Shown here in pieces: positions 17,188 to 41,901 of a DNA stretch of 64,000 bases (the stretch's first letter is position 1; the number at the start of each line of letters is the position of its first letter). Made by a program: the position numbers and the translations under genes. The stretch lies in the IMG/VR virus record IMGVR_UViG_3300032116_000004, positions 124,001 through 188,000 of that record; one strand, written 5' to 3'. The notes under the pieces were generated by a model. That model saw nothing but the letters and a program-made list of their open reading frames with translations, made no database searches and had not been told where the DNA came from.

Positions 17188-17395
17188 CACGCCAAGACCG
17201 TTTTCAGTTGATCAATCAACCTTTGATTCCAATTGGGATCAGATTTTTAAAAAACCCAAAAAGACCGAAGGTGAACTGCAGGCCGAAGCCTTCCTGCGAG
17301 ACGAATATTACGACTTAGATGATGGATGGGACCATTACAGCGGCTTGCCCAATCCCAAAGCATATAGAAAGGACGATGATGCAAATAAGAGTTAA
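17174..17395 (+). CDS. Hypothetical protein
   Basis: Overlapping ORF in operon. Confidence 0.65.
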   Translation: MGKGSTPRPFSVDQSTFDSNWDQIFKKPKKTEGELQAEAFLRDEYYDLDDGWDHYSGLPNPKAYRKDDDANKS

Positions 17396-17579
17396 ACAAA
17401 ATCCTGAAGAATTTGGTAAGTGTGGTTGTGGGCGTAGTCCAACTGGCAAATGCTGTGGGTGGCATGCCTTGACAGAAGATGCTTATCGTGTTAAACTAAG
17501 CGAGTGGGAATTTGAACAATACAAAAAACAAGCCCAGGAAACATGGGGCGATAGTTGCACAACAGGAAAAGGCGAATGA
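17379..17579 (+). CDS. CDGSH-like Fe-S/zinc-finger small protein
   Basis: CGCGRSPTGKCCGWH resembles C-x-C-x2-S...C-D-G-S-H; AAGGA SD. Confidence 0.6.
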   Translation: MQIRVKQNPEEFGKCGCGRSPTGKCCGWHALTEDAYRVKLSEWEFEQYKKQAQETWGDSCTTGKGE

Positions 17580-17695
17580 AACGATTGAGGATGGCATTGG
17601 CTCGATGGATATTGGGACAACACTGTGCCTGTTACAACATGGGTTATCATAAAATGTGTGATTATACAAAACGTCGGATTGGTAATAAAAAATGA
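17576..17695 (+). CDS. Small hypothetical protein (39 aa), not in ORF track
   Basis: MKRLRMALARWILGQHCACY...; ATGA overlaps at both ends. Confidence 0.5.
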   Translation: MKRLRMALARWILGQHCACYNMGYHKMCDYTKRRIGNKK

Positions 17696-18612
17696 AAGAA
17701 CTATGGACAGAAAAATATCGCCCACGTGAACTCAAAGATTATGTGTTCCGCGATGACGCACAACGGCAACAGGTAGAAGGCTGGGTCAAAAGTGGGGCTA
17801 TTCCACATCTGCTATTTTCGGGCGCCCCAGGTGTGGGCAAGACTACCTTGGCCAAGATACTGATCAATGAACTAAAGATTGATGACTATGATATATTAGA
17901 AATCAACGCCAGCCGCGAAAACTCAGTGGACACCATCCGAGACAAGATCACTGGCTTTGTGCAAACCATGCCTTATGGCGTATTTAAAGTGGTGCTACTA
18001 GACGAGGCAGATTACATATCGCCCAACGGTCAGGCCGCACTGCGTGGTGTTATGGAGACTTATCATGCTAGTGCTCGGTTCATACTTACTTGTAACTATC
18101 CTAACCGCGTTATTCCTGCTCTGCACAGTAGATGCCAAGGATTTCATATCGAGCGGGTTGACGTCACTGAGTTTACTGCTCGCATGGCTACTGTTCTGGT
18201 AACAGAAAGTGTGGAGTTTGATCTTGATACTCTAGATACCTATGTCAAAGCCACTTATCCGGATTTGCGTAAGTGTTTGAACATGTGCCAAATGAATTCC
18301 ACAGGTGGCAAACTAGAACGTCCACACGGTGACGAAGGTGGCACACGAGAGTGGAAACTGGATGTCGTAGATCTGTTTAAACAAGGTCGCATCCGAGAAG
18401 CCCGTGTGCTGTTGTGTCAGTCAGCCAGGCCTGAGGAAATGGAAGACGTGTTCCGTTGGATGTATGACAATTTAGATCTTTGGCACACTGATGTCCACAA
18501 ACAAGATCAAGCCATAGTGATCATACGCAATGGTATAGCCAACATACCCATGGTAGCAGATCAGGAGATCAATCTTGCCGCTACCATGATCGAACTAGCG
18601 GGACTCAGATGA
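17692..18612 (+). CDS. Clamp loader ATPase subunit (T4 gp44/RFC-like)
   Basis: LWTEKYRP, GAPGVGKTT, LEINAS, LLDEAD, SRC. Confidence 0.92.
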   Translation: MKELWTEKYRPRELKDYVFRDDAQRQQVEGWVKSGAIPHLLFSGAPGVGKTTLAKILINELKIDDYDILEINASRENSVDTIRDKITGFVQTMPYGVFKVVLLDEADYISPNGQAALRGVMETYHASARFILTCNYPNRVIPALHSRCQGFHIERVDVTEFTARMATVLVTESVEFDLDTLDTYVKATYPDLRKCLNMCQMNSTGGKLERPHGDEGGTREWKLDVVDLFKQGRIREARVLLCQSARPEEMEDVFRWMYDNLDLWHTDVHKQDQAIVIIRNGIANIPMVADQEINLAATMIELAGLR

Positions 18613-18899
18613 GATATCTCATCATCAATTACTACCGCAAACCCAATGGCAAATTGGACGAAGCCACCACGGTAAGCAAAAAGGTCAAGATGCGCGACTG
18701 GCAATCAGCCGCGGTGATTTTAGATTTCAAAGAATGTAAAGTTTTAAAAGCCACGCTGGATGGTCAGTCAGTGCCCAAAGATTTCGATCGTATCGTTGCA
18801 TTCTATCATCAACATTACCCCAACATCATCGAAAGACTATTCAACGAAAACGGTTATGAGATCAAAACTGCGGAACCTGGATCGACTGATCCTAACTGA
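18609..18899 (+). CDS. Hypothetical protein
   Basis: Coupled ORF. Confidence 0.65.
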   Translation: MRYLIINYYRKPNGKLDEATTVSKKVKMRDWQSAAVILDFKECKVLKATLDGQSVPKDFDRIVAFYHQHYPNIIERLFNENGYEIKTAEPGSTDPN

Positions 18900-19473
18900 T
18901 TGTGATGGAGTGCTCCTGGATTGGGAGTGGGCGTTCAATGTGTGGGTGCAACAGCACGGGTTCGTAGAACAGCCCGATGCAAAACTGCACTACGACATGG
19001 GCATACGCTACGGCACGTCCAAAGAACAGATACGCAAACTCATAAAGATATTCAATGAATCCGCTTCTATCGGATTCCTTCCGGCCTTGAGAGATTCGGT
19101 CTACTATGTCAAACGTCTGCACGAGGAGTATGGTTTCAGATTCCACTGTATTACCAGTCTCAGTCGAGATGAGAACGCACAGAAACTGCGTGAAATGAAT
19201 CTGCAAAAAATCTATGGTGCCACAGTATTTGAACGCATCGTGTGTTTGGATACCGGTGCCCATAAAGACGAAATCTTGCAGGAATACGAAGGCACTGGAT
19301 GTTGGTGGGTCGAAGACAAGCCCGAAAATGCTCTAGCAGGCTGGCAACAAGGGCTCAAACCCATCCTCCTAGAGCATGGGCACAACATGGGATATGACCA
19401 CCCAGATATTACAATATGCAAGAACTGGGCGGACATTTTCCGTCAAGTCACAGGATCCTCTTATTCAGCATAG
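18856..19473 (+). CDS. HAD-superfamily nucleotidase-like protein
   Basis: LTDCDGVLLDW, WVEDKPEN. Confidence 0.8.
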   Translation: MRSKLRNLDRLILTDCDGVLLDWEWAFNVWVQQHGFVEQPDAKLHYDMGIRYGTSKEQIRKLIKIFNESASIGFLPALRDSVYYVKRLHEEYGFRFHCITSLSRDENAQKLREMNLQKIYGATVFERIVCLDTGAHKDEILQEYEGTGCWWVEDKPENALAGWQQGLKPILLEHGHNMGYDHPDITICKNWADIFRQVTGSSYSA

Positions 19474-20213
19474 AGTCCTAGCACTGTGTCAATGATGGGG
19501 TGACGTTGTATATCCCGTTTTCCTAAGGTGCATACTGCTAGGCCATTTCCTGATTGAGATTTCAGTCTCTCGCAGAGATCTAGTAGGCCATTGTCTCGCT
19601 TGGTGCGGTCGGTCTGTTCAACGTCCCCGGTAACTACGATTTTTGAACCGCTGCCAATGCGGCTCAAAAGCATTTTCATCTGTCCCGGAGTGGCATTCTG
19701 CATCTCGTCAGCGATGATCCAACTGGATTTGAAAGTCCTGCCTCGCATGAAAGCCAAGGGTGAGATTTCTATGATCTGGTCGTCCATCATCTTGACAATG
19801 TCTTGTGGTCTGTAGTATTCACGCAACACATCCAGCAGTGGCCTGGTCCACGGTTCCATCTTTGATATCAGATCGCCGGGCAGGAATCCATGTCGCTCAT
19901 CCTCTACTCCTATCGCAGGACGGGTTAGAACTATCCTTTCACATTGCCCGGCTTTGAGAGCCTTGATGGCCGCTTGCATGGCCAAATAGGTCTTGCCCGT
20001 TCCAGCAGGACCTACAGCCACCACTATGTGTTGGCTGGGATCTAACAGGGTTAAAATGAGATGTTCTTGATTGCGGGTTTTTGGCACTAGATCTATGTGC
20101 CTGGTTTGTCGGAGTGCTTGGTTAAAGTTGATGGTGTTTTCTTGCTGTGTGTGAATACGTCGTTGGGCTTTGGCCCCTCTTGCTCTACTCAATGTCAATT
20201 CTCCTTTGAACAT
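19461..20213 (-). CDS. phoH: PhoH-family ATPase (start uncertain)
   Basis: GPAGTGKTYLA, LTRP, GFLPGD, FMRGRTF, DEMQN, TGD; minus-strand TAAATA at 20235-40. Confidence 0.92.
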   Translation of the reverse strand: MFKGELTLSRARGAKAQRRIHTQQENTINFNQALRQTRHIDLVPKTRNQEHLILTLLDPSQHIVVAVGPAGTGKTYLAMQAAIKALKAGQCERIVLTRPAIGVEDERHGFLPGDLISKMEPWTRPLLDVLREYYRPQDIVKMMDDQIIEISPLAFMRGRTFKSSWIIADEMQNATPGQMKMLLSRIGSGSKIVVTGDVEQTDRTKRDNGLLDLCERLKSQSGNGLAVCTLGKRDIQRHPIIDTVLGLYAE

Positions 20214-21485: not shown

Positions 21486-22103
21486 ATGATAGTGAGTTGT
21501 GGCGACAGTTTTTTCTACGGTAGCGATCTACAAGATGCAAACAGCACATGGCCCGCGCTGGTCGCGCAGAGACTGGACTCAGAGTATCATTGTCTAGCCC
21601 AACCTGGCGTGGGCAATCTCCGCATACTACAACAAGTGATTGAGGCGCTGGATCGTTTTGGGCCCCGGGCCACCTATCTCGTCAACTGGACCTGGATTGA
21701 TCGTTTTGATTATGTCCACAGCCAAGACGCCCAGTGGCATACCATACGGCCCGCATTGGATGATTCACCAAATGACGATCTTTACTATAGACATTTCCAC
21801 GGTGAACTGTCAGACAAGTTCCGGAATTTGATCTATGTATCACATGCGTGCGACATGATGCAAGGTCATCGATGTGTGATGACTTACATGGATCGATTGC
21901 TGTTGGATCAACAATGGCATGCTCCGGATTATGTGCAGGTTTTACAAAGCAAAATACACCAACATCTCCAGGATTTTGATGGACAGACATTCCTCGAATG
22001 GAGCCGAGGTCGTGGCTTTGCCGAGAGCCCAGGTTGGCATCCACTGGAGGCAGCGCATGTGGCAGCCGCTGATCATTGGTTACACAGAGTGTCTGCACTA
22101 TGA
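21486..22103 (+). CDS. SGNH/GDSL-hydrolase-like protein (paralog of 3866)
   Basis: CGDSFFYG, PGVGN, VNWTW, QWHAPDY, WHPLEAAH shared with 3866..4561. Confidence 0.7.
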   Translation: MIVSCGDSFFYGSDLQDANSTWPALVAQRLDSEYHCLAQPGVGNLRILQQVIEALDRFGPRATYLVNWTWIDRFDYVHSQDAQWHTIRPALDDSPNDDLYYRHFHGELSDKFRNLIYVSHACDMMQGHRCVMTYMDRLLLDQQWHAPDYVQVLQSKIHQHLQDFDGQTFLEWSRGRGFAESPGWHPLEAAHVAAADHWLHRVSAL

Positions 22104-23209
22104 GTTATTGTCCTTTGCCATTCCGACATGTTTTCATTGAGCCACGAGGTATCAAGCCTTGTTGCAGTTTCACAGAGACTGCTCCGATCACTGTGACTCA
22201 GTGGTTGTCCAGTGATCGATTGAGGAATTTGCAACAAAACATCCTGTCAGGATCCATAGACTCTGGATGTGCTGACTGTATCCGTAACGAACAACAGCAT
22301 GGTGTGGGCACCAGACTGGGAGCGTTGCAACACTATGGTTCCACTCCTGTGTCAGACACTGATATAGATTATGTGGATTATCGTTCCAGCAACGTCTGCA
22401 ACTTTCGATGCCGGTCATGCGAACCTTATTTTTCCAACGGTATCGCACAAGATGTGCGCCAGAGCGAATTCTTACAAACTCTCTATCAGATTCCGCCAGA
22501 AAAAACCGCCACAGTGTCAGACAAACAATGGATCTTGGACAACATATCGACCATTGATAGACTGATGTTCACCGGCGGTGAACCTACCTTATTGCCCGAA
22601 GTAAAAGAAATAGTCAATCGTATACGACGTGAGCAGTTAGATACCAAGATCATCATGATCACCAATGGCAGCTTCCGTGATCCATGGTGGTTGGAAATCG
22701 CCAGCACCATGCCCAATGTTAATTTCACTGTGAGTCTTGATGCTGTGGGCCCAGCTGCAGAAATCATACGCCACGGCACCAGTTGGTCGCAGATCGAGCG
22801 CAACGTCCTGTATCTAGCCAACCATGGTCACAGTGTGAACTTCAGCACAGTGATAACGCAACTAAATTTTTTCCAACTTGGACCCTTGCTGGCATTTATC
22901 AACATCGTCCGGAAATTCAACGATCGTCCCAACGGACGCACACAGTTCATACAGATATGCAACCATCCTAGATACTTCTCTCCCATTAACTGGCCAGATC
23001 ATATGCGTCCTGCGGCCATTGACTATCTTGATTGTTTGTTGGCTCTGGATTTTGTAGATTCTGCACGTGATGTCCTGGTAGATCTGCGCAACAACATCAT
23101 CCAGCATGAATTTGACTCCGATGCATGGACCACTGCCCAACGTGTGAACCTAGAACTAGACGTCTTGAGAAAACAAGACCATACTTGGCTATTTGAGCCC
23201 ACAAAATAA
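22100..23209 (+). CDS. Radical SAM protein with N-terminal SPASM/twitch-like Cys cluster
   Basis: CNFRCRSC, TGGEP, KPCC...CADC. Confidence 0.85.
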   Translation: MSYCPLPFRHVFIEPRGIKPCCSFTETAPITVTQWLSSDRLRNLQQNILSGSIDSGCADCIRNEQQHGVGTRLGALQHYGSTPVSDTDIDYVDYRSSNVCNFRCRSCEPYFSNGIAQDVRQSEFLQTLYQIPPEKTATVSDKQWILDNISTIDRLMFTGGEPTLLPEVKEIVNRIRREQLDTKIIMITNGSFRDPWWLEIASTMPNVNFTVSLDAVGPAAEIIRHGTSWSQIERNVLYLANHGHSVNFSTVITQLNFFQLGPLLAFINIVRKFNDRPNGRTQFIQICNHPRYFSPINWPDHMRPAAIDYLDCLLALDFVDSARDVLVDLRNNIIQHEFDSDAWTTAQRVNLELDVLRKQDHTWLFEPTK

Positions 23210-26003: not shown

Positions 26004-26450
26004 ATGAAGTTGACACGCAGGGTTTTACACAATCAAGCCAAGCCTGTAGATTTCCAGTATCCTGTCCGCAATCATGATCTGGCCACCCAGATGTTTGGGT
26101 TGATGCGCTTGCAAAATGGCATAGGATTGGCAGCTCCACAGATTGGCCTTTCCAAACGATTGTTTGTGATGAGCGTTGACGGACACGATCGGGCGTGCTT
26201 TAATCCTGTCATAGTGTCTAGCAGTGATGTGTTTGCCGAATTTGAGGAAGGATGCTTGAGTTTTCCCGGAGACTCATGTATACTTAAAAGACCCGATGCG
26301 ATCAGGGCGAGATACCAAAATCATTTCGGTGATTGGGTCGAAGCAGATCTTTCGGGACTTGAAGCCAGATGTTTCCAACACGAGTTGGATCATCTACAAG
26401 GAATAACCATGCATGATCGAGCCAAGGAACAGAATGCAACAGAATCCTGA
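26004..26450 (+). CDS. def: Peptide deformylase
   Basis: GIGLAAPQIG, EGCLS, QHELDHL. Confidence 0.92.
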   Translation: MKLTRRVLHNQAKPVDFQYPVRNHDLATQMFGLMRLQNGIGLAAPQIGLSKRLFVMSVDGHDRACFNPVIVSSSDVFAEFEEGCLSFPGDSCILKRPDAIRARYQNHFGDWVEADLSGLEARCFQHELDHLQGITMHDRAKEQNATES

Positions 26451-28695
26451 AATTGAACAAATATTAGCCCAGGCGCAAAAACTGGCCCGCGTAAAGCGAC
26501 ACGAATATGTCACGCTGGAACACCTGGCCTTGGCCTTGGTAAGGCATCAGCCTTTCACGCAGGTCATCGTCAAGTTTGGCACGCCTGTGGATCATCTCGA
26601 TCAAGACCTTGAAAGTTATATCGACAGCATGGTCAGCCTGCGTATGAATCGCGACGAAGATCCCAAGAAAACCAATGGATTGGAACGTGTGTTCAATCGT
26701 GCGCTCACCCAGGTGTTGTTCACAGGCCGCAGGCAAGTGACCACTATAGATCTATGGTTGGCCATCATGAACGAGTCAAACAGCCATGCACACTATTATT
26801 TCCTCAAGCACGGGCTGGAAAAGAAAGAGTTCATCGAATTTTGGCAAGCCAACTACACTACCAAGGACGGAGTGATCAGTGATGATCAGGCCAACGAAAT
26901 CCTCACCGAACACTGTATCAATTTCAGCCAGCGGGCGAGAGAGGATAAACTGGAGCCCTTGATCGGGCGATCCACAGAACTCAATGAAATCATCACGGTA
27001 TTGGCCAAAAAGTTTAAGTCAAACGTGCTCATGGTAGGAGATCCCGGAGTGGGCAAGACTGCCATCGCCGAGGGCCTGGCCACGCTGATATACAACGGCA
27101 CAGTGCCAGAATTCCTAAAGGATCATGAAGTCTGGAGCCTGGAGATTGGCTCATTGCTGGCAGGAAGCAAATATCGCGGCGAGTTCGAAGAAAAACTCAA
27201 GGCCGTGCTCATGGCCTTGGAACATAAGAAAAATGTCATACTGTTCATAGATGAAGCGCACACCATGCGCGGTGCTGGTGCAGGGTCTGGATCCAGTCTA
27301 GACTTTGCCAACATGATCAAGCCGGCCATAACCAAGGGCTTGCTCAAAGTCATAGCATCAACCACTTGGGAAGAATACTATGAGTCGTTTGAAAAAGATC
27401 GCGCATTGATGCGCCGTTTCTATCGTGTGAGCATCGACGAACCTGATCATGATACTACCATACGCATACTGACAGGATTGCAACCTCGCATGGAAGAATT
27501 CCATCGGGTCAAAATCAACGCAGATGCCATCACCAAAGCAGTGGAACTGGCCAGTCGTTATATCACTGATCGCAAAAATCCTGACAAGAGCATAGATCTA
27601 GTAGATGCGGCCTGTGCCCGAGAACGCATCAAAGATCTTGATGATGTGGTGATCACCGCAGATTTGATCCAGGATCAAGTGGGCCGTGTGGCCAATATTC
27701 CACCCGAACGTGTGAAGAATGATGTAAACACCCGAGTGACCGAACTAGACAGCAACATCAAGCAAAAACTTTACGGTCAGGATCATGTGGTGGATCAAGT
27801 GTTGGAACGTATCTATGTGAACTTCGCTGGTATCGCATCAGGTCGCAGGCCAGTGGGCAGTTTCCTTTTCCTGGGCCCCACTGGCACAGGTAAAACAGAA
27901 CTGGCACGGCTGTTGGCCGACAATCTCGACATGAAACTGTTGAGATACGACATGAGCGAATATCAAGATCGACACACCGTGAGTTCACTGCTGGGAGCAC
28001 CTCCGGGCTATGTGGGCTATGATGACAGCCAACTGGCCGGGGGCAAACTGATCAATGATCTTTCTAAACATCCATTCTCAGTGCTGTTGTTCGATGAAGT
28101 GGAAAAAGCCCACCCAGACATAGCCAACATCTTCCTGCAGATGATGGACGAAGGCACCATCACTGGAAGCAATGGCAAGACCGTGGACGTCAAGAACTGC
28201 ATCATCATCATGACGTCAAATCTAGGTGCTCGAGACAATGAAAATAACACAATCGGGTTTGGCCAGAGCCTCGAGAAGACCGGCGAAGAAGATCGCGCTG
28301 TGAAAGATTACTTCCGCCCGGAACTGCGCAATCGCTTGGATCTCATCTGCAAATTCAACAAACTGGATCCGCTGAGTATCAAGAAAGTGGTCATCAAGTT
28401 CGTAGACGAACTCAAACGCAGTCTAGTGGATCGCAACATCAGACTCACGCTGACAGAAGCCATGGTGGAGCATCTAGCAGACGTTGGCTATGATCCCAAG
28501 ATGGGTGCGAGGCCGTTGGGTCGCAAAATCGACGAACTGATCCGCGTGCCATTGAGCCGCAAGATCCTGTTTGATCGCTTGCAGGACTGCGAAATCACAG
28601 CAGACTATCGCGATGGCACAGTGGCTTTCAGCGATCTCAACCCAATACCCAGCACAGGAACCGTGGACGCCGATGGTATCATACAAGTCGACTAG
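26434..28695 (+). CDS. clpA: ClpA-like AAA+ chaperone
   Basis: Clp N-domain, two AAA modules (GDPGVGKT, GPTGTGKT), GARPL. Confidence 0.9.
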   Translation: MQQNPEIEQILAQAQKLARVKRHEYVTLEHLALALVRHQPFTQVIVKFGTPVDHLDQDLESYIDSMVSLRMNRDEDPKKTNGLERVFNRALTQVLFTGRRQVTTIDLWLAIMNESNSHAHYYFLKHGLEKKEFIEFWQANYTTKDGVISDDQANEILTEHCINFSQRAREDKLEPLIGRSTELNEIITVLAKKFKSNVLMVGDPGVGKTAIAEGLATLIYNGTVPEFLKDHEVWSLEIGSLLAGSKYRGEFEEKLKAVLMALEHKKNVILFIDEAHTMRGAGAGSGSSLDFANMIKPAITKGLLKVIASTTWEEYYESFEKDRALMRRFYRVSIDEPDHDTTIRILTGLQPRMEEFHRVKINADAITKAVELASRYITDRKNPDKSIDLVDAACARERIKDLDDVVITADLIQDQVGRVANIPPERVKNDVNTRVTELDSNIKQKLYGQDHVVDQVLERIYVNFAGIASGRRPVGSFLFLGPTGTGKTELARLLADNLDMKLLRYDMSEYQDRHTVSSLLGAPPGYVGYDDSQLAGGKLINDLSKHPFSVLLFDEVEKAHPDIANIFLQMMDEGTITGSNGKTVDVKNCIIIMTSNLGARDNENNTIGFGQSLEKTGEEDRAVKDYFRPELRNRLDLICKFNKLDPLSIKKVVIKFVDELKRSLVDRNIRLTLTEAMVEHLADVGYDPKMGARPLGRKIDELIRVPLSRKILFDRLQDCEITADYRDGTVAFSDLNPIPSTGTVDADGIIQVD

Positions 28696-32889: not shown

Positions 32890-35800
32890 ATGGACATCAA
32901 TGAATTAGACAGTTACCGCCTGTCGGACGCGGTAAAGTTTCACACTGAATTAAACCCTGCACTCTGGGACGGCGATCGCATGCGTCCCGAAGTGCGTGAG
33001 GCCCTGATCAAAATCGCCGATGATTTCCGCGAATTCCTGGGCATCAGTGATCTCGCAGTGGAAGATATCACTGTGAGTGGATCCAATGCCGCATACACCT
33101 ATACTCCCCATTCCGACATAGATCTGCATCTCTTAGTAGATTTCAGCAAGCTCAATCCCGACCAAGTATATCAAGAGCTGTTCAACGCAAAGAAATATCA
33201 ATACAACGATCAACACGATATAAAAATCAGAGGCTATGACGTCGAGCTCTATGTGCAAGACGCAGGCAAGCCTGTTCGCAGCCTTGGTGAGTATTCCATC
33301 GTGCGTGACGACTGGACTCGTATTCCCGTGCGACGCCAAGGCAATCTCGACGAAAAATCAACCCAAGCAAAATACGAAAAACTCAGAGACCTGATTGAGC
33401 TTGCACTGACCAGCGATGATCTCCAAACAGTCACCAATCTCACTGACGTGATAAAACGATATCGGCAGGCCGGATTGGATGAACATGGCGAGTTCGGACC
33501 TGAGAATCTGGCCTACAAGATCCTGCGCACACAGGGCTTGGTCAAGCGATTGTTTGATCATCGTGCCAGCCTAGAAGATTCAAAACTGAGCCTGGCTGAG
33601 CGCCGAAAGAAAAAGAAAAAATCCAAAAAGAAATTCCGTTACGGTTCTTTTGGTGGATACTATTATCCAGGCTATGGTTATTATGGTCAGACCGGCGACG
33701 CCGAAGCCGCAGACGGTGGTGGTGATGGGGGCGGAGAAAGTGTGCGCGAAGACACAGAGATCAAAGTCCAAGCCAAGAGCATACCCATAGACAAAGTGGT
33801 GCGACGCTTCGTGCATTTTGCCGCGCACTATCTCAAACTAGATCAACTGCCTCGCATCATCTTGCAAGGTGAAAAATTTACCAAGCACATCCATTCAATG
33901 GGCCATTATGTAGATGACAAGAAAATGATCGAGGTGGCCACGCACGGTCGCCACATCATGGACATCCTGCGCACCGTGGCACATGAACTCACACATTACA
34001 AACAGCATGAACGCTTGGGCCGAGACATGCCTGACACAGCGGGTCGCACTGGCAGTCCCTACGAAAATGAAGCCAATGCCAAGGCCGGCATAATTATGCG
34101 CCATTTCCAAAATCGTTATCCAGAATTCTTTGGCGCAGAAACAGTGGAAGAACAACTCACGGAGTTTTCACCCGCACAGTCTGGTGCTACCGGTGAAGAC
34201 GATGACATCGAAGCACACTATGGTGATCAGACTCCACCAGGACCAGAATTCCCTCCTACCATGCCCGCAGGCACTGTGAGGGTAGATGTGAGCGATGTGT
34301 ATGACTGGTATAAACTGGGACAGCATATCTCCAACATGAAAGGCTTGGGCAAGCATGACTTTGGTGCAGGTCCGCCCAGTTCCATAATCTCGTTTGGCGA
34401 TGAAGAAACTGAACATAAGTTTATCAAAGATCTTGAAGCCACGGGCCTAGATGTCACTGACATCGATCCCAAGGATCCCCGGCAACCCGCTGGCATGCGA
34501 AAAGTCAAGACCGATCCTACCTACAATGTAGACGAGGGTCTAGGAAAAACACTGGCCACTGGTGCCTTGGCAGCCGCTGCCGCACTGGGACAGCCAGCAC
34601 AGGCACAGGATGTGGGGCGCACGGCCTATCAGATAGGCAAGCAGATATATCAACCCTCGGGCATATTCACCCGTGCAGGTGCTGAAGAAGAACTCAAGGG
34701 CATAGCCCGAGACATGGCACGTGGCAGCAGAGAAATACGTGTGGGTGGCAAGTTGATCTATGGTGGCCCTAGACCGCAAGGTGAGCGTGTTGCGTCAAAC
34801 GCCGCGGCTGCATCAGCAGAAGAAGCCTATCGACAGGCCCTGGAAAATGCCATCAACCGCGCACAACAACAGCATGGTCCTATCACACTGGGCCCCGGCG
34901 GTTGGAAAGTTGTGGATTATGAAGCCGACCAGATGGGCAACACATTCCGTGCCATGGTGGCCATAGAAGGTCCTGCACCGCGCAGAGAATCCATACAGAC
35001 GCCTGTGAGTCGCAGCCAAAAGGATCGCGAAGATTACTACAAGTTTGTCATGGGCAAGGCCACGACAGGTCGTCCTTTGACACGCTCGGAACAAGAATTC
35101 ATCAAGACCTATCGTCTACAACAGAAAATACAAGGTAAAGTGGCCGAAGATGCCGCAGGATACATCCCCACCAAGAAGCAGGCCCGAGATCCACGTTTCA
35201 AAACAGCACTCACAGTGGACATCCGACCTGGACAGGTAGGCAAGGAAGCCAACAAGTTGGGATTGCAGACCGACAGCCAAGGACGTCCTGCACTGTTGAT
35301 CAAGAACTTGGCCAATGCCTTGAAGGAATACAAAGAGACTGGAGTGTTTGAAGCAGTCAATCCCGTGACTCCTGCCGTGCCAGACCCACGACAAAAAATA
35401 GATCCATATCAAGGGCAGGCCCAGAAACGACAAAGACCACAAGACCGACCAAAGAAAAAAACACCATCGAGCACTGGCAATCCAAGATTCGTCAATATCG
35501 AAGTCAAAGAAGACGAAGATCTCATGGAAGTCAAGATGTCGCCCGGGGCCTTGGAAGCCTGGGCACGATCACCTGAAGCCGAAGGTATACGTGCTGGCTT
35601 TGAAGCAGAAATGATCTTCCGTGATACCCGCCGTGACGAAGATGAAGACTACGATCAAGAACCTGACTACGACTACGATGAGCGGCCCGATGACATCGAC
35701 CATGTCATAGACTTCTTCTCCAATGATGACTATGGCTATGGTTTGAGTCGCCAAGGCGCCAGGAATCTACGAGAAAGCCTGTGGGAAGCCTATACGGAAT

Positions 35801-37989
35801 GGGTGGATGAACAGATCAGCGAGAGTTGGGACGAGAATGCCGAAGATCAAGTGCGTGACTACATGGAGACCAACGTCTGGGACGATGACTCAGAACGCGA
35901 AAGCCGTATCCAAGACAAGGTCGAGGAAATGTTTGGTGACGAGGCAGTGCCCGCTATAATGAAAGCCGGCGACAGCGCACCAAGATTCACCCGGAGTTCA
36001 GATCAAGATGAATATGCACAATCCAACGAATTATACCAAAAATTCAAGCAAGCATCCGATGCGGCCTACGAAGCATTCGAAGAAGAAATAACCAATGAGT
36101 TTGAAAGCCAAGGCGAATATTACGATGCGGCTCGCGAATATTATTGGGACATGACGCGAGAAGGCGGCGAGTTTGACGAGCGCGACTTCCTCCGTGACCG
36201 CTATGGTTACATGACTGACATCGCCAACGAAGAAAGCCTTGACTGGCCCTACTGGAGCGGCGGTTCCTCTGGCACTGGCAGCCGTGAGTGGAGCGATATT
36301 GGTGACAGTTTACAGCGTGCCATTGACATGCCAGTGAGAGTGAGTTCAGGCTATCACTCAACCACACGCCGGCCCGGTCTATGGATCATCGAACCCGACG
36401 GCAGCCTAGATCCCGATGATCGTGATGATGAAATGGGCCTGGAGATCGTGTCTCCGCCCTTGCCCTTGCCAGAAACCCTGGAAAAATTAAAACAGGTCAT
36501 TGAGTGGGGTAACTCAGAAGCCGATGCCTACACCAACTCGTCCACCGGCTTGCACATGGGCATCTCTATACCCTATGTGGGCGGTGACGTAGACTATGTC
36601 AAATTGGTGCTGTTCATGGGCGACGAATATGTGTTAGACAAGTTTGGTCGTGCTTCCAACACCTATGCGGCATCGGCCATGGAAAAACTACGCAACAGCA
36701 TGCGAGTGGCACGCCGCCGTGGCACCTTGACTGAAGCCCGATTTGATCCCATGGGTGCGCTAGAACTGGTGCAGAAAAATCTCATTGAACTGGCTGCTCG
36801 TTATGTGCAGAACGGTGTGGGAGACAGCAAGTATACTTCCGCACACATCCAGGACGGCTACATCGAGTTCCGTAGCCCTGGTGGTGATTATTTGAGCATG
36901 GAGAGTCGCGGTGAATATGATGACATCCGCAATACCATGTTGCGTTTTGCTCGGGCCATGCAGATCGCAGGCAGCCCCAGCCTGGAACGTCGAGAGTATG
37001 CCAAGAAACTCTATAAACTGATCTCACCTGGTGCACAGGATGACGGTCTCAAGTTATTTTCTCAATTTGCCGCTGGCACCATAACTCCAGAAGAACTCAA
37101 GAAACAGTGGGCCAATGCTGTGCTCCAGAAAGAGATACCCACCACTGGTCAAGAAGAGTGGGAAGTGTATGATCAGCGCAAGTCTGGTCCGGATGGAGTG
37201 ATCGACTCTTTCTATGCTGATGAATATGACACTGCCTATATGAAAGCCCAGGACAAGTATGGCAACACACCCGAATGGCGCAATTTGGACATCCGTAAGA
37301 AACAACCCTGGTATGATGTCAAGGATTCCTACGGTGACATCATACTCACTGTGAGAGCCAGAGATTTTGACAGCGCCAAACAAAAGGTCCAGGCAGAGTA
37401 TGGGGATCGACTCTCCGACGATTGGGAGATATATCGCAGGCCCGATGACACTCCTGAGCCAGAAAAGAAACTGAGTCCACGTGCTCAAGTGGCCAAACGC
37501 CTCAAAGAACCCAAGGTCACACCGGCAGTGGCCGCAGACAATGAGCGAGATCGTGAACAGATACAGGCCCGCATAGGTGAGCCTCAACCCGCAGGCGCAG
37601 TATCAGACGCCGGACACTATCGTGTGATGTGGGATGAGCGCAGGAATGGAACAGTAACCAGTGATTCTTTGAACATTGATGCTGCCAGTGCCGAAGCAGC
37701 CAGACAGAATGTGCTAGATGCGTTGCAAATGCAAGGTCGAGATGTCATACAGATATCTGCACACCCCCAACAGCCACCAGCCTGGCGGCGCAATCGAGAA
37801 CCTGTTGCCACATCAACACAGGGCGAATTCTCAGGACAGTGGCAAGTTCGTAATGCCAATACCGGAGAAGTGGTTTACACATTCAGTGGCATAGGCAACA
37901 GTCAAGGCGATGCCAATCGTGTGGCACAACAATGGGTCCAACGCACTAGATTTGATGATCCTGTAGAAGTCGTTCCAGAGTTGAGATAA
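32890..37989 (+). CDS. 1699-aa multidomain polyprotein: Pol-beta NTase, HExxH peptidase-like, signal-peptide module, amidoligase, others
   Basis: SGSNA..DIDLH..ELYVQD; AHELTH..ENEANA; GFEAEM/EPDGSL/LEIVSP/STGLH/IEFR. Confidence 0.8.
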   Translation: MDINELDSYRLSDAVKFHTELNPALWDGDRMRPEVREALIKIADDFREFLGISDLAVEDITVSGSNAAYTYTPHSDIDLHLLVDFSKLNPDQVYQELFNAKKYQYNDQHDIKIRGYDVELYVQDAGKPVRSLGEYSIVRDDWTRIPVRRQGNLDEKSTQAKYEKLRDLIELALTSDDLQTVTNLTDVIKRYRQAGLDEHGEFGPENLAYKILRTQGLVKRLFDHRASLEDSKLSLAERRKKKKKSKKKFRYGSFGGYYYPGYGYYGQTGDAEAADGGGDGGGESVREDTEIKVQAKSIPIDKVVRRFVHFAAHYLKLDQLPRIILQGEKFTKHIHSMGHYVDDKKMIEVATHGRHIMDILRTVAHELTHYKQHERLGRDMPDTAGRTGSPYENEANAKAGIIMRHFQNRYPEFFGAETVEEQLTEFSPAQSGATGEDDDIEAHYGDQTPPGPEFPPTMPAGTVRVDVSDVYDWYKLGQHISNMKGLGKHDFGAGPPSSIISFGDEETEHKFIKDLEATGLDVTDIDPKDPRQPAGMRKVKTDPTYNVDEGLGKTLATGALAAAAALGQPAQAQDVGRTAYQIGKQIYQPSGIFTRAGAEEELKGIARDMARGSREIRVGGKLIYGGPRPQGERVASNAAAASAEEAYRQALENAINRAQQQHGPITLGPGGWKVVDYEADQMGNTFRAMVAIEGPAPRRESIQTPVSRSQKDREDYYKFVMGKATTGRPLTRSEQEFIKTYRLQQKIQGKVAEDAAGYIPTKKQARDPRFKTALTVDIRPGQVGKEANKLGLQTDSQGRPALLIKNLANALKEYKETGVFEAVNPVTPAVPDPRQKIDPYQGQAQKRQRPQDRPKKKTPSSTGNPRFVNIEVKEDEDLMEVKMSPGALEAWARSPEAEGIRAGFEAEMIFRDTRRDEDEDYDQEPDYDYDERPDDIDHVIDFFSNDDYGYGLSRQGARNLRESLWEAYTEWVDEQISESWDENAEDQVRDYMETNVWDDDSERESRIQDKVEEMFGDEAVPAIMKAGDSAPRFTRSSDQDEYAQSNELYQKFKQASDAAYEAFEEEITNEFESQGEYYDAAREYYWDMTREGGEFDERDFLRDRYGYMTDIANEESLDWPYWSGGSSGTGSREWSDIGDSLQRAIDMPVRVSSGYHSTTRRPGLWIIEPDGSLDPDDRDDEMGLEIVSPPLPLPETLEKLKQVIEWGNSEADAYTNSSTGLHMGISIPYVGGDVDYVKLVLFMGDEYVLDKFGRASNTYAASAMEKLRNSMRVARRRGTLTEARFDPMGALELVQKNLIELAARYVQNGVGDSKYTSAHIQDGYIEFRSPGGDYLSMESRGEYDDIRNTMLRFARAMQIAGSPSLERREYAKKLYKLISPGAQDDGLKLFSQFAAGTITPEELKKQWANAVLQKEIPTTGQEEWEVYDQRKSGPDGVIDSFYADEYDTAYMKAQDKYGNTPEWRNLDIRKKQPWYDVKDSYGDIILTVRARDFDSAKQKVQAEYGDRLSDDWEIYRRPDDTPEPEKKLSPRAQVAKRLKEPKVTPAVAADNERDREQIQARIGEPQPAGAVSDAGHYRVMWDERRNGTVTSDSLNIDAASAEAARQNVLDALQMQGRDVIQISAHPQQPPAWRRNREPVATSTQGEFSGQWQVRNANTGEVVYTFSGIGNSQGDANRVAQQWVQRTRFDDPVEVVPELR

Positions 37990-38573
37990 TGCGATCTCAG
38001 GAATTTATCTCAGAAGTAAACTTTCCCGATGAGTTATCAGTGAGCGACCGCATACAAAACTATTTTTTTGATCGCGGCTATCAGTTGGCCGGCGAAGGAC
38101 GCGATCAGATAGCCTTGTTGAGTCCCAGAAACACCATACTCAAAGTCTTGGGCATAGGTGAAGATGAGCGCGAACAGATAGTAAAAAACTACGTGAAATT
38201 TTTCGTCAACAATCAGAACGATCCTTATATTCCCAGGATTTACAACGTGGGTGATTTTGAAGTAGATGGAGAAACATATTTTGTGTATGAGATGGAATAT
38301 CTAGACTATGTGGCCAACGAAGAAGCCACGCTGGACTATCTAGAAAATCTCATGTCAGCAGTGGCACGCGGACGTGATCGTGTGCAGGAGTTCATGAAGA
38401 ACAATCCTGCTCCTAAAGAACTGGATCGTGATGACATCGTGGGTTTAGTAAATACTACGCTGAAATTAGAACAAGCCTTGGGCGGCCAGGCACCATTGGA
38501 TCTCAGCCAGATAGAGAACCTTCGCCGCCGCAGTGATGGACATCTAGTGATAATGGACCCCTACAGCCTATGA
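37989..38573 (+). CDS. Protein-kinase-like protein with MRxxEF leader
   Basis: AGEGRD, ILKV, IPRIY, MEYL, DLSQIEN, VIMDP. Confidence 0.55.
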   Translation: MRSQEFISEVNFPDELSVSDRIQNYFFDRGYQLAGEGRDQIALLSPRNTILKVLGIGEDEREQIVKNYVKFFVNNQNDPYIPRIYNVGDFEVDGETYFVYEMEYLDYVANEEATLDYLENLMSAVARGRDRVQEFMKNNPAPKELDRDDIVGLVNTTLKLEQALGGQAPLDLSQIENLRRRSDGHLVIMDPYSL

Positions 38574-38968
38574 GAGCACAAGAATTATTAGTCGAAATCA
38601 CTCGCAGAGACTTCTTGCGTGGTGCAGGTGCCGTGGCTGGCTCTGCGGCATTGGGATCGGCACAGGCTCAATCCGATCGGAACATCACCAAGATTATCAA
38701 CTCGGCTGCCATGTTGTGGGTGATATGTAAAAAACACTATCCCAACAACCCCAACACCCGAGAACTAGAAGAAACAGTCAAACGGCTTTGGAAAAGTAAA
38801 AGCGACAATGCTGTGGCATTTAATGAAGAATACACAGCAATGAAAGAAAGATTGGCAGATTGGGAAGCCCGAGATCCTGCCGGCTATGCCAACTTTGTCA
38901 ACCGATATATGATGAACTTTGCCAAGATTAAAGCCAACTTGGAAACATTACCAGAGATGATGATATGA
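38570..38968 (+). CDS. Leader + twin-arginine signal protein
   Basis: MRAQELLVE then ITRRDFLRGAGAVAGSAALGSAQA. Confidence 0.75.
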   Translation: MRAQELLVEITRRDFLRGAGAVAGSAALGSAQAQSDRNITKIINSAAMLWVICKKHYPNNPNTRELEETVKRLWKSKSDNAVAFNEEYTAMKERLADWEARDPAGYANFVNRYMMNFAKIKANLETLPEMMI

Positions 38969-40809
38969 GAGCACAAGAATTCGCTAATTCCAAACTAGTC
39001 ATCTTTGACATCGACGATACCCTGGTCAACACAGACACCAAGGTCAATGTGGTGCGAGATGGCCGGATCGTGAAGCAACTCAACAGTCACGATTTCACGC
39101 ACTATCACTTACAGCCCGGTGAAGAGTTTGACTTTGGTGCTTTCCGTGATGCCCGCGAATTCTACACACAGGCCCGGCCCATACCCGGCATGATCCGCCA
39201 ACTCAAACAAGACATCGCCACGGGCAACAAAGTGATCATGCTTACTGCCCGCTCGGACTTCAATGACCGAGAAGTTTTCCTGGACACATTCCGCCAGTAT
39301 GGCATTGACATGTCAAAAGTGCATGTGTATCGTGCTGGTAACTTGAACATCAAAGCCGCCACAGAAGAAAAGAAAAAGATCATACTACAACATCTCTTGG
39401 GCAAAGAACACTACGACAAGATCATCATGTATGATGATTCTGTGCCCAATTTAAATGCTTTTCTTAGCCTCAAACAAGATTATCCATGGTCTAAGTTCTA
39501 TGCCTGGCACGTGGATCCATCAGGAAAGGCAGACGAGTATCATAGGACTGATATCCGTGTCACAGAAGTCAGTGCGGATCGCTTGCAACAGTATCTAAAT
39601 CGCGCTGGACAACAGGTTGATCGCAGACAGGAAAGAATGGCCCAGGCCCGTGAGCGACTCAACAAGAGTTATGAAATATACCATGCAGACCGTCCTGCTG
39701 GCTCCAGCCAGATTGTAGATCGTTTTGAATCTGACACCCCTGCGGAAGCCCAACGTTATTATGAAAAGTTTATTCAGAACTACGAAAGTGATCGAGACTT
39801 TGATTTACAACTGCGTCGAAGCACAGGCATCGTGGAAGATTCATTCCGAGGCATCGATATCTCCATGGAAAAGGAAGATGATGAAATCATGGTCCAGGCG
39901 TCGGCGGGTGGCAAGCAGTTAGGGTCAGTGTTGTTTGTGGAATACGATGGCTATCTCATGCCACAGGATCTTGAAGTAGATGAACGATTCCGTGGGCAAG
40001 GTATCGCCCAGGCCATGTATGACTATGTGAAAAGCCTGGGTTATCGCATACGCAGGAGTGGCCAGCAGACCGACGCAGGTTCTGGATTCTGGAGAAAACA
40101 TCGTCCAGAACAGAATGTCTGGGAACAAAGTGTGGCGAAAGGCGATAAAATGAGCCTCATTAATCTAGATCAATCCTTGGCCGACACACCATCGGTATGG
40201 AAAAAATTCATAAGTTTGTTGCCACCACAATTGGCCCGAGAGTTTGTGGATGAGCGTCCAAGACCCGATCAAGACGATATAGACTTTCTCACTCCTTTGC
40301 GTCTGGTCAGTCCGCAGCCTGTATCAGTGCGTGTGGCCGACTTATTGCGTCATCCAGAGAATCAAGGAACCATTGGTAGATCGCCCGACGATGTGGTAAC
40401 AGCAGTAAACCAACGATGGGGTCTCAAGATCCCGTCAGGTAAGAAATATGATCCCAATCCCGCACGATATCGTGCCTATGCCCAGATGGCACCCGGCACA
40501 GCCAGTCCTTCAGTCATGGCCGACGGGGTGATCCTGTTTGGAGCAGGCAGATTCGTGGCCGCGGCTCTGCGTGGTGATGAAACCATGCGTGTGTGGAGCA
40601 TGACAAGAAAGCAAGGCGTGAAGGAAGTAGAGGAAAACTTTGCTGATGGTCGAGTAAAGGGCAAGAGCCGCCCGGGTCGTGTGAAACGTGCGGGTGCTAG
40701 TTGTAGTGGATCAGTCACAGATCTGCGTGCCCGTGCCAAGAAGTATGGTGGAGAACGGGGCAAAATGTATCATTGGTGCGCCAACATGAAGTCAGGTCGG
40801 AAGAAATAA
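38965..40809 (+). CDS. Polyprotein: HAD phosphatase + GNAT + ParB-like + basic Cys module
   Basis: FDIDDTL/LTARS/YDD; VDERFRGQGIA..QTDAG; ILFGAGR; NFADG..HWCAN. Confidence 0.75.
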   Translation: MRAQEFANSKLVIFDIDDTLVNTDTKVNVVRDGRIVKQLNSHDFTHYHLQPGEEFDFGAFRDAREFYTQARPIPGMIRQLKQDIATGNKVIMLTARSDFNDREVFLDTFRQYGIDMSKVHVYRAGNLNIKAATEEKKKIILQHLLGKEHYDKIIMYDDSVPNLNAFLSLKQDYPWSKFYAWHVDPSGKADEYHRTDIRVTEVSADRLQQYLNRAGQQVDRRQERMAQARERLNKSYEIYHADRPAGSSQIVDRFESDTPAEAQRYYEKFIQNYESDRDFDLQLRRSTGIVEDSFRGIDISMEKEDDEIMVQASAGGKQLGSVLFVEYDGYLMPQDLEVDERFRGQGIAQAMYDYVKSLGYRIRRSGQQTDAGSGFWRKHRPEQNVWEQSVAKGDKMSLINLDQSLADTPSVWKKFISLLPPQLAREFVDERPRPDQDDIDFLTPLRLVSPQPVSVRVADLLRHPENQGTIGRSPDDVVTAVNQRWGLKIPSGKKYDPNPARYRAYAQMAPGTASPSVMADGVILFGAGRFVAAALRGDETMRVWSMTRKQGVKEVEENFADGRVKGKSRPGRVKRAGASCSGSVTDLRARAKKYGGERGKMYHWCANMKSGRKK

Positions 40810-40817
40810 GTAATATC

Positions 40818-41000
40818 ATGCGAGCAAGAGAACTCACAGGACACAAGTGGATCACCACTATAACCATAAGCAATCCTGACTATACCGGCCGGATTGATGT
40901 GTCAGTGTATGCCCACAATCAAGCACAGGCCCGACAACTGCTCAAAGCGCAGTATCGCATCCAGGATCATCACATCGGATCCATCAGGAAGGCGCCATGA
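40818..41000 (+). CDS. Small protein with MRAREL leader
   Basis: Leader motif; ATGA overlap with next gene. Confidence 0.65.
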   Translation: MRARELTGHKWITTITISNPDYTGRIDVSVYAHNQAQARQLLKAQYRIQDHHIGSIRKAP

Positions 41001-41314
41001 GAGTCGCAGAATTCATCGCAGAAGATCTGTCAGCGGCTGGCTTCCGTATCCATGTTAGTCCACACCTGGATAATCGTGCAGAAAATCGCGGCATATCCAT
41101 GGCCACCATCTTGGGCATACTCAACAGATTGGATCGGGTGCGCAGACACATCCGTGGATTTGAGCCCAACTCACAGTTCAATGTCTATGACAGCCAACAC
41201 AACATACATCTTGGCATGATGCGATCAGGATTCGATCCAGATAAACTGTTGTTGAACACAGTGTATCACAACGAAAACTACCACGGGCGCAATCCCGTCA
41301 TAAAGGTTCGATAA
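40997..41314 (+). CDS. Possible BECR/DUF4258-like ribonuclease with leader
   Basis: MRVAEFIAE; SPHLDNRAENRGIS ... LNTVY. Confidence 0.45.
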   Translation: MRVAEFIAEDLSAAGFRIHVSPHLDNRAENRGISMATILGILNRLDRVRRHIRGFEPNSQFNVYDSQHNIHLGMMRSGFDPDKLLLNTVYHNENYHGRNPVIKVR

Positions 41315-41901
41315 TGAGAGCACAGGAGTTCCAGGAAGTGGCACTGCTGACCCGGGTCAAAGGCAAGGGCGAGGAGCCCAGCAATCTGCCCAAGTTTGGA
41401 CGGCCCATACTGCCCAAAGAAGAGATCAAATACCTTGGGAAAAAAGTCGGCAACATGGGCCGCTATGAGATCTGGCGAGACTATGTGGGTAGCCAGGTCA
41501 GTTACATCCTGGTAGATCCCCAAAGCCGCAGAGCCATAATCCATGCCTTTGGCAGCAGATATCAGAGAAATCCCAACTCATTCATAGTGGCAGGCCTGTA
41601 TGCCGCACCCGGCAATCCTGTGCGTGCCAGCCAGTTCTATCATGCCTTGATCACGGAATTAGGACTGGATCTCATTTCTGATATCAAGCAGAGTCCCGGA
41701 GGCTACAAAGTGTGGCGTGAATTACAGCAAAGATTTCGTGACGTGAATGTATATGGCTATGATACCAAGCGCAACGAACTGCTGAACGTCACTGCACGTG
41801 ATGAAGAAATGACACATGTGCCCGCTGAAATCGTGCGCAAGGGCGGGCCCGATGTCAAAGACGTGGCCCGCAACATCAGGCTAGTGGCCACAGCAAAGTG
41901 A
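41314..41901 (+). CDS. GNAT-like protein with leader
   Basis: MRAQEFQE; ASQFYHAL...LISDIKQSPGGYKVWREL. Confidence 0.5.
   Translation: MRAQEFQEVALLTRVKGKGEEPSNLPKFGRPILPKEEIKYLGKKVGNMGRYEIWRDYVGSQVSYILVDPQSRRAIIHAFGSRYQRNPNSFIVAGLYAAPGNPVRASQFYHALITELGLDLISDIKQSPGGYKVWRELQQRFRDVNVYGYDTKRNELLNVTARDEEMTHVPAEIVRKGGPDVKDVARNIRLVATAK

Follow-up and report, generated by a model that had tools for sequence, protein, structure and literature searches.

A conserved export-signal-like segment at a module boundary within a giant phage polyprotein

A 1699-aa protein of a T4-like jumbo phage carries, exactly at the boundary between two shuffled modules, a conserved segment resembling a bacterial Sec signal peptide, which could act only once the protein has been cut at that point. 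This suggests that the phage makes a periplasm-bound factor by cutting up a polyprotein, although cleavage, export and packaging are all inferred from sequence, without a signal-peptide predictor score or experimental data. The sequence analyzed (hereafter referred to as the window) is a stretch of 64,000 nucleotides, corresponding to positions 124,001 to 188,000 of the IMG/VR record IMGVR_UViG_3300032116_000004. In the descriptions below, a slash indicates a junction or a proposed cleavage site.

The signal-like segment and its position in the polyprotein

The features of the polyprotein and of the genes downstream from it are as follows (window coordinates):

32890..37989 (+), ORF of the 1699-aa polyvalent polyprotein (P0001), with a conserved N-terminal unit (aa 1-421), a shuffled cassette region (about aa 422-875) and a conserved C-terminal part containing an amidoligase
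33013..33210 (+), nucleotidyltransferase-like domain (aa 42-107; Pfam NTP_transf_2, E 0.006, below cut-off; phrog_36119, E 2.9e-42); the first ~235 aa have stand-alone homologues in cultured phages (tblastn matches to Maribacter, Synechococcus and Lak phages)
33907..34086 (+), zincin-like metallopeptidase region (aa 340-399) with HELTH at 365-369 (MPTase-PolyVal, PF18818, 12.9 bits, cut-off 27.5; Peptidase_M78, 11.9 bits, also below cut-off); this unit ends T-V-E-E421/Q422, the first junction, where alignments break at about residue 422
34237..34536 (+), module A (aa 450-549), hyper-conserved (mean column identity 90% over 54 distinct copies), ending in a K-T-D-x-x-Y-x-V-x-E tail
34528..34536 (+), junction motif V547-D548-E549 (aliphatic-x-Glu), with proposed cleavage after E549
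34537..34605 (+), signal-peptide-like segment G550-A572: n-region GLGK (34537-34548), h-region T554-G567 (34549-34590) and c-region QPAQA (34591-34605), with the predicted signal peptidase I site between A572 and Q573
34606..34989 (+), putative mature module Q573-E700, with two predicted helices followed by a small domain, ending P-R-R-E700/S701 (V-R-E or V-K-E in most homologues)
34786..34968 (+), confidently modelled beta-alpha-beta-beta domain (aa 633-693, pLDDT 85-94)
34990..35148 (+), next cassette (aa 701-753), which follows module A directly in most homologues and ends V-A-E753/D754
36298..36567 (+), Amidoligase_2 domain (aa 1137-1226; Pfam E 7.9e-7, 29.6 bits, cut-off 22)
37989..41901 (+), run of five ORFs (starts 37989, 38570, 38965, 40997 and 41314) with the N-termini MRSQEFISE, MRAQELLVE, MRAQEFANS, MRVAEFIAE and MRAQEFQEV, respectively, resembling the T4 capsid-targeting sequence MKTYQEFIAE (PMC8442874)
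38570..38968 (+), 132-aa ORF with a leader ending L-V-E9, followed by a twin-arginine signal ending AQA/QS

The first-pass annotation, made from the sequence alone, described an internal Sec-type signal peptide directly after a V-D-E junction, and the presence of this sequence was confirmed: G550-A572 is present directly after V547-D548-E549, and is followed by Q573-D574. The end of the region that it delimited (34990) is the first base after E700, which proved to be the other boundary of the same module. The segment has a single Lys (K553), a core of 14 uncharged residues (T554-G567) and a c-region with a helix breaker and small residues at -3 and -1 (G567-Q-P-A570-Q-A572/Q573). It contains the most hydrophobic 11- and 15-residue windows of the protein, and is its only uncharged hydrophobic stretch of 12 or 14 residues. 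The h-region is nevertheless Ala-rich and weak, with a best 10-mer Kyte-Doolittle mean of 1.76, versus 1.93-3.14 for the phage's own N-terminal signals, most of which end A/Q, as this one does. The n-region lacks the S/T-R-R-x-F-L-K motif of Tat signals, and the copy in the window has no Cys and, thus, no lipobox. Prediction of a complex between residues 550-600 and E. coli signal peptidase I (LepB) gave no answer and is not evidence either way.

In a single sequence, this pattern is only weakly non-random. A loosely defined signal-like pattern (K/R upstream, a 12-mer of uncharged residues with a mean Kyte-Doolittle value of at least 1.15, and small-x-small downstream) was found in 7% of whole-protein shuffles and in 2.8% of shuffles of residues 500-700. 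It is therefore conservation that carries the weight, and pure chance was rejected on the basis of conservation and of the lipobox distribution described below. In the AlphaFold model, the segment is not buried in a fold (burial would have counted against the initial interpretation), the corresponding residues (1-24) having a pLDDT of about 35.

Module shuffling and conservation of the signal among homologues

The central modules are shuffled among 121 metagenomic homologues, from a family with at least 260 metagenomic members. Local alignments to 120 homologues break at residues 549-552, and breaks were also observed at residues 700-703. Module A ends in V-x-E in 107 of 108 copies, with a highly variable P1' residue, and is followed by at least 12 unrelated sequences. 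The AF2 model of module A was of low confidence (mean pLDDT 52.8), and was used only to note that the last ~23 residues before the junction are non-regular (pLDDT below 50). All 33 homologues containing the module found in the window keep the K/R, the uncharged Ala-rich core and a small-x-small site before Q/S (variants AKA/Q, AKS/Q, ATA/Q and AQA/Q). All 33 copies start straight after [LIVM]-x-E and end in [VR]-[RK]-E.

A broader screen identified a junction-adjacent hydrophobic segment in 63 of the 121 homologues, about 60 of these segments being signal-like and lying straight after such a Glu. At the true junctions, P3 is L (31), V (16), I (12) or M (2). A K or R lies within the first 3-7 residues after the junction in nearly all signal-like copies, P0030 (GIGQ) being an exception, and the distance from the junction to a small-x-small/Q site is 18-24 residues. 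In about 15 copies, the segment instead has a Cys preceded by SLSG, AGTSG, AGTAG or AGTPG and followed by S/A/T. A strict PROSITE-style lipobox pattern matched only six times in the 121 proteins, always in this segment, with the Cys 15-24 residues after a Glu and a K/R in the first seven, although most of the lipobox variants have a Pro at -2 (TPGC), which is not canonical. The homologues P0048 (AQA/Q type) and P0039 (lipobox type) are 44% identical (E 9e-28) over this segment and the downstream mature part, so the signal type switches within one orthologous module.

A profile search of 1.84 billion representatives with the downstream domain yielded eight hits, six of which were polyproteins or polyprotein fragments, the other two being spurious repeat proteins, and a word-based search with the short lipoprotein-type form yielded nothing. 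The downstream domain thus has no stand-alone or known secreted homologue in these searches, which neither supports nor refutes export. Residues 573-700 gave only weak matches to dodecin, SPOR, DUF4189 and lipoprotein folds (TM at most 0.37 by query), Pfam found nothing for residues 423-560, 550-700 or 701-900, and the ESM Atlas yielded only unnamed viral clusters with scores of at most 0.62. No DNA or protein match to the cassette region was found in 50,697 phage records, in which only the N-terminal nucleotidyltransferase matched.

Possible processing and routing of the module

The genome encodes a Peptidase_S77 protein (PF03420, E 4.8e-28, genome positions 312548-312967) that aligns with the structure of the T4 gp21 prohead protease (5JBL, E 2.9e-15), and T4 gp21 cuts after L/I-x-E (PMC9026906). 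The gp23-like capsid protein has I-L-E34/N and L-K-E42/N at the place where T4 gp23 is matured. The same kind of run of genes with leaders like the capsid-targeting sequence was also found after the polyprotein in a related contig (L002). The parallel with a Tat signal drawn in the first-pass annotation is real: the 132-aa ORF begins MRAQELLVE/ITRRDFLRGAG, its score exceeds the cut-off for Pfam TAT_signal (28.8 bits, cut-off 22.7), and its homologues keep both leader and signal. The host is diderm, as the phage carries a Porin_4 gene (E 2.8e-38).

The interpretation we favour, with moderate confidence, is that residues 550-572 constitute a Sec-type (signal peptidase I) export signal embedded in a polyvalent polyprotein built from cassettes ending in aliphatic-x-Glu. 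Cleavage after E549 and E700 would release a 151-residue fragment with the signal at its new N-terminus. Export by the host Sec machinery and cleavage at AQA/QD would then leave a periplasmic protein of about 128 aa (Q573-E700), the same module being made as a lipoprotein in homologues. In our preferred scenario, which is inferred, the gp21-type protease cuts the polyprotein inside the prohead, the pieces are injected with the DNA, like T4 internal proteins, and the signal-bearing piece is re-exported from the cytoplasm to the envelope of the newly infected cell, for example to exclude superinfecting phages or to counter an envelope defence. However, the N-terminus of the polyprotein (MDINELDSY) lacks the MRAQEF-type leader, so packaging is not indicated by this criterion, the P3 residue at the junction is Val rather than the Leu/Ile of the T4 consensus, and aliphatic-x-Glu is a low-information motif also found inside domains. 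It remains possible, but rather unlikely, that T4-like jumbo phages package both the polyprotein and the neighbouring CTS-tagged proteins in the head, with cleavage after Glu unmasking Sec, lipoprotein or Tat signals, such that ready-made proteins reach the periplasm or outer membrane and act there, in superinfection exclusion or against envelope-level defences, before any phage gene is expressed.

Other explanations are less well supported. The signal may be the same, but with the junctions cut by the polyprotein's own zincin domain in the cytoplasm of the producing cell, the module being exported there with nothing packaged or injected. A zincin with HExxH does lie upstream, the signal-bearing module directly follows the zincin unit in most homologues (at about aa 400-460), autoprocessing of polyvalent proteins by such MPTase domains has been proposed (PMC5512222), and the polyprotein has no capsid-targeting leader. 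We nevertheless consider this doubtful. The same Glu-ending junction is found far from the zincin, at E549, E700 and E753, the zincin scores are below cut-off, and the determinants lie on the non-primed side (P1 Glu, P3 aliphatic) with a free P1', a pattern matching the gp21 type that would probably be unusual for a zincin. In addition, fusion of the modules would bring no obvious benefit if the products simply acted in the producer cell. It is also unlikely that the segment is a weakly hydrophobic helix that is not removed, such as a signal-arrest-release-like or anchor segment tethering an ejected or assembling protein to the inner membrane. The core is 79% Ala/Gly/Thr (11 of 14 residues) with only three Leu, a composition that appears similar to that of SAR domains, and ejected proteins of other phages insert into membranes. 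However, 14 residues is short for a membrane span, a helix-breaking G-x-P and a small-x-small site are conserved after the core, and the lipobox Cys in orthologues implies processing by signal peptidase II. Furthermore, the cassette is absent from about half the homologues and is not, therefore, an essential entry component.

A flexible Ala/Gly/Pro-rich inter-domain linker with only a coincidental likeness to a signal appears very unlikely. The segment does lie at a domain boundary, is low in complexity and has a low pLDDT, and similar patterns arise in shuffles at the frequency reported above, but linkers do not keep an N-terminal K/R, a charge-free core of fixed length and a -3/-1 site over about 50% sequence divergence. 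Moreover, the strict lipobox was found at this spot and nowhere else in the 121 proteins, and other junctions in the same proteins have no such segment. An internal translation start was rejected. Nothing but the signal-like look of the segment favours it. The codons are GAG GGT CTA GGA AAA, so Leu551 is encoded by CTA, which is not a start codon, and there is no ribosome-binding site. The nearest upstream ATG (M535) has no ribosome-binding site and is not conserved, the second residue is often Trp or Ile in homologues, and there is no promoter-like site on the + strand. The segment could therefore act only after cleavage, as the first-pass annotation had inferred.

Comparison with known systems

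Polyvalent phage proteins and protease-matured head proteins are both known, and both are thought of as cytoplasmic effectors. A conserved export signal switching between Sec and lipoprotein types, exactly behind a protease-type junction, would be a new routing principle, and, if the pieces are injected, the phage could alter the periplasm or outer membrane within moments of infection. Aliphatic-x-Glu followed by a variable residue would also provide a concrete cleavage rule for this large uncharacterised family, making the long-standing prediction of polyvalent-protein processing directly testable. No description of export signals inside packaged phage proteins was found in the literature searched. 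Like the polyvalent proteins of phages and conjugative elements described by Iyer et al. (PMC5512222), this protein is a very large mosaic with a zincin-like peptidase region (although its MPTase-PolyVal score is below cut-off) and nucleotidyltransferase and amidoligase domains, and with extensive domain shuffling between relatives. Those authors predicted proteolytic processing and delivery with the DNA, but did not mention signal peptides or transmembrane segments, whereas, here, the cassette boundaries are a defined aliphatic-x-Glu site and about half the family carries an internal Sec-like or lipoprotein-like signal.

The genome resembles that of T4 in having gp21-, gp23-, portal- and scaffold-like head genes, junctions compatible with the L/I-x-E rule (ending in Glu, generally with an aliphatic P3, cleavage itself being inferred), and neighbouring genes with leaders very like the capsid-targeting sequence, forming a variable cluster, as at T4 internal-protein loci (PMC9026906, PMC8442874). 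However, T4 internal proteins are single small proteins cut once, whereas a 1699-aa chain lacking the leader would here be cut at several internal junctions, and, to our knowledge, no T4 internal protein is known to carry an export signal behind its cleavage site. In the jumbo phages phiKZ, 201phi2-1 and SPN3US, many head-packaged proteins are cut after Glu at short motifs by a gp21-related protease (PMC9026906, PMC5694885), but no unmasked export signals are described in the papers searched, the motif is S/A-x-E and the phage lineage is different. Envelope-targeted exclusion factors, such as the T5 Llp lipoprotein (PMC9586334) and, probably, T4 Sp and Imm, offer a plausible functional analogy, as small phage proteins sent to the periplasm or outer membrane by ordinary Sec or lipoprotein signals. 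They have no sequence or fold similarity to this module, and appear to be encoded by separate genes, with N-terminal signals, expressed after infection. Finally, in eukaryotic viral polyproteins, such as those of flaviviruses and pestiviruses, an internal signal sequence also directs one product across a membrane, coupled to proteolytic processing, but these signals probably act co-translationally and are cut by host signal peptidase, whereas the weak, Ala-rich signal described here follows 549 residues with no other hydrophobic stretch and would need prior cleavage and post-translational Sec export in a bacterium.

Organization of the polyprotein and its cassette junctions

All sizeable genes of the window (positions 124001-188000 of a single 315,778-bp viral contig) lie on the + strand. 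The segment of interest is located in a 1699-aa ORF. The features of this ORF relevant to the analysis are as follows:

32890-37989, + strand: the 1699-aa polyprotein ORF
33601-33720, + strand: low-complexity stretch (aa about 238-277) between the nucleotidyltransferase and zincin domains
34237-34536, + strand: cassette preceding the junction (aa 450-549, hereafter referred to as module A)
34528-34536, + strand: V547-D548-E549, the junction motif
34528-34990, + strand: one mobile module together with its upstream junction

Pfam and PHROGs searches identified a nucleotidyltransferase-like N-terminus, a zincin-like region with HELTH at residues 365-369 (scores below cut-off) and an Amidoligase_2 domain at residues 1137-1226. 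The low-complexity stretch consists of a run of Lys (RRKKKKKSKKK), followed by a Gly/Tyr-rich piece (GGYYYPGYGYYG) and a Gly/Asp-rich piece, and residues 900-1120 are extremely acidic (up to 35 D/E per 100). The first-pass annotation had proposed that a Sec-type signal peptide lies directly after a junction within this protein, and the sequence on which this proposal was based is indeed present: V547-D548-E549 is followed by G550 to A572 (GLGK, then 14 uncharged Ala/Leu/Gly/Thr residues, then QPAQA) and by Q573-D574. This segment holds the most hydrophobic 11- and 15-residue windows of the protein, and is its only uncharged hydrophobic stretch. Taken alone, however, it is only weakly significant, as a loosely defined signal-like pattern arises in 7% of shuffles of the protein.

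A search with residues 500-760 yielded 260 homologues, all of them metagenomic proteins of about 1000-2700 aa, on contigs of up to about 370 kb. Local alignments of the 120 sequences retrieved showed the central third of these proteins to be a set of cassettes that are reordered, inserted or missing, with breakpoints in the query at about 422, 549-552, 700-703 and 751-756. Module A is extraordinarily conserved, with a mean column identity of 90% over 54 distinct copies (85-98% identity), whereas the flanking cassettes are about 50% identical. In 107 of 108 copies it ends in V-x-E; the residue after the Glu is A, T, V, D, N, S, G, E, F or M, and at least a dozen unrelated sequences follow. The last ~10 residues of module A (K-T-D-P-T-Y-N-V-D-E) are almost invariant, yet predicted to be non-regular. 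Such conservation suggests binding to a conserved partner (protease, scaffold or portal), although nothing identifies this partner. The cassette beginning with the signal-like segment was found in 33 of the 120 sequences, in which it follows at least four different upstream contexts, always directly after [LIVM]-x-E, and always ends in P-[VR]-[RK]-E, corresponding to E700 in the window. The interval 34528-34990 indicated by the first-pass annotation therefore delimits one mobile module together with its upstream junction.

Signal-like segments in the homologues

We scanned all 121 proteins for uncharged hydrophobic runs. In this screen, 63 of them carried a junction-adjacent run, and about 60 of these runs are signal-like. 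Most are located at about aa 400-460, straight after the zincin unit. Two kinds of segment were observed. One is signal-peptidase-I-like, with a K/R within a few residues of the Glu, an Ala-rich core and then AQA↓Q, AKA↓Q, AKS↓Q or ATA↓Q (the arrow denotes the putative cleavage site), with a length of 18-24 residues measured from the junction. The other has a Cys preceded by SLSG, AGTSG, AGTAG or AGTPG and followed by S/A/T. A strict PROSITE-style lipoprotein pattern matched only six times in the 121 proteins, and all six matches lie in this segment, with the Cys 15-24 residues after a Glu and a basic residue in the first seven. The two kinds precede homologous mature sequences: the homologues P0048 (AQA↓Q) and P0039 (lipobox) share 44% identity (E 9e-28), and the window's copy aligns with the lipobox-type homologue P0099 through the shared QDVGRTA...RAGAEEEL region.

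Switching between soluble-periplasmic and lipoprotein signals within one orthologous family is what real exported families do, and is hard to explain for a linker or a buried helix. The AlphaFold model of residues 550-700 leaves its residues 1-24 as a free, low-confidence helix (pLDDT about 35) and models only residues 633-693 confidently, as a beta-alpha-beta-beta unit, so that burial of the helix in a predicted fold, the objection foreseen in the first-pass annotation, does not apply. An internal start is not present either, the codons being GAG GGT CTA GGA AAA. The phage's own N-terminal signals mostly end in A↓Q, like this one. Nevertheless, the core is less hydrophobic than those of these N-terminal signals (1.76 against 1.93-3.14), and most lipobox variants have Pro at -2. 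Outside the window, the genome (231344-232483 and neighbours; 309396-315438) carries a Gram-negative porin gene (Porin_4, E 2.8e-38), which shows that the host is diderm, several ORFs with ordinary N-terminal signal or lipoprotein signals, and a T4-like head module (portal, acidic protein, S77 protease, scaffold and gp23-like capsid protein).

No function could be assigned to the module. A profile search of 1.84 billion representative proteins found only six real hits, all polyproteins or polyprotein fragments, plus two spurious repeat proteins, and a search with the short lipoprotein-type form found no stand-alone protein. Fold searches gave only weak dodecin-, SPOR-, DUF4189- and lipoprotein-like matches, Pfam and the ESM Atlas gave nothing useful, and docking on E. 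coli signal peptidase gave no answer. The cassette is optional, being absent from about half the family, which points to an accessory factor rather than to an essential entry component.

Candidate proteases and the downstream ORF cluster

The genome encodes a Peptidase_S77 prohead protease (E 4.8e-28) that aligns with T4 gp21 (5JBL), and its gene sits among genes for a portal, an acidic protein, a scaffold and a gp23-like capsid protein. T4 gp21 cuts after Glu in L/I-x-E (PMC9026906), and the capsid protein encoded here has I-L-E34↓N and L-K-E42↓N where the mature T4 gp23 begins. The region following the polyprotein and other genes of the window comprise:

37989-41901: cluster of five consecutive, mostly overlapping ORFs (starts 37989, 38570, 38965, 40997 and 41314)
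38570-38968: 132-aa ORF of this cluster, with a twin-arginine signal
38965-40809: 614-aa protein of this cluster, combining a HAD-type phosphatase-like N-terminus (DxDxT near residue 15; PHROG polynucleotide kinase family) with a weak GNAT acetyltransferase hit and a very basic C-terminal tail
26413-28695: 760-aa ClpB/Hsp100-like protein with two AAA domains (phrog_4871, E 2.6e-233)
313-1719 and 22076-23209: two radical-SAM-domain proteins of unknown role
6094-9432 and 10470-13304: two large proteins (1112 and 944 aa) without a PHROG match, the first with several Gly/Ala-rich uncharged repeats and the second with a He_PIG Ig-like domain, which may be fibre or surface proteins

The products of the five ORFs start MRSQEFISE, MRAQELLVE, MRAQEFANS, MRVAEFIAE and MRAQEFQEV, and are strikingly similar in this respect to the T4 capsid-targeting sequence MKTYQEFIAE, which is cut after its final Glu (PMC8442874; PMC9026906). 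Three of the five have [LI]-x-E at positions 7-9, whereas those starting at 38965 (F-A-N-S) and 41314 (F-Q-E) do not. The bodies are unrelated: a 194-aa protein with only a weak PHROG match to a T7-type protein kinase, the Tat-signal protein, the HAD-phosphatase/GNAT fusion and two unknowns. A related 341-kb contig (L002) has eight such ORFs after its polyprotein (14884-19775). In L002 the ClpB/Hsp100-like protein sits next to DnaJ and peptide deformylase genes, so these phages carry their own chaperone and protein-maturation set. The locus of the five ORFs looks like a hypervariable T4-type internal-protein cluster, that is, one encoding proteins packaged in the head and injected. The second ORF is the Tat case with which the first-pass annotation drew a parallel: ITRRDFLRGAG...AQA↓QS comes right after L-V-E9 of the leader, the signal is canonical and passes the Pfam TAT_signal cut-off, and all five homologues keep leader plus signal. 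Its mature part has no family assignment.

The junction rule, with an invariant P1 Glu, an aliphatic P3 and a free P1', puts the determinants on the non-primed side, which probably fits a serine protease of the gp21 type better than a zincin. However, the N-terminus of the polyprotein itself lacks the leader of the downstream ORFs, which argues against its packaging, and no cultured relative exists to provide a proteome. Autoprocessing by the zincin of the polyprotein, as proposed by Iyer et al. for polyvalent proteins in general (PMC5512222), remains a possible alternative.

Comparison with known systems

The presence of the signal-like segment reported in the first-pass annotation is confirmed, and its interpretation as an export signal acting only after cleavage at the junction is supported by comparative evidence, although cleavage, packaging, export and function remain inferences. 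The new element is the conserved internal Sec or lipoprotein signal placed immediately behind a protease-type Glu site, paralleled by a Tat signal in a neighbouring gene. Such an arrangement is described neither by Iyer et al., in whose paper the terms “signal peptide” and “transmembrane” do not occur (PMC5512222), nor in the other literature searched. In other respects, the protein belongs with the polyvalent proteins of Iyer et al., as it has the mosaic multi-effector architecture and a zincin motif, albeit with a sub-threshold Pfam score and with delivery untested, and the locus looks like the T4 internal-protein and gp21 system.
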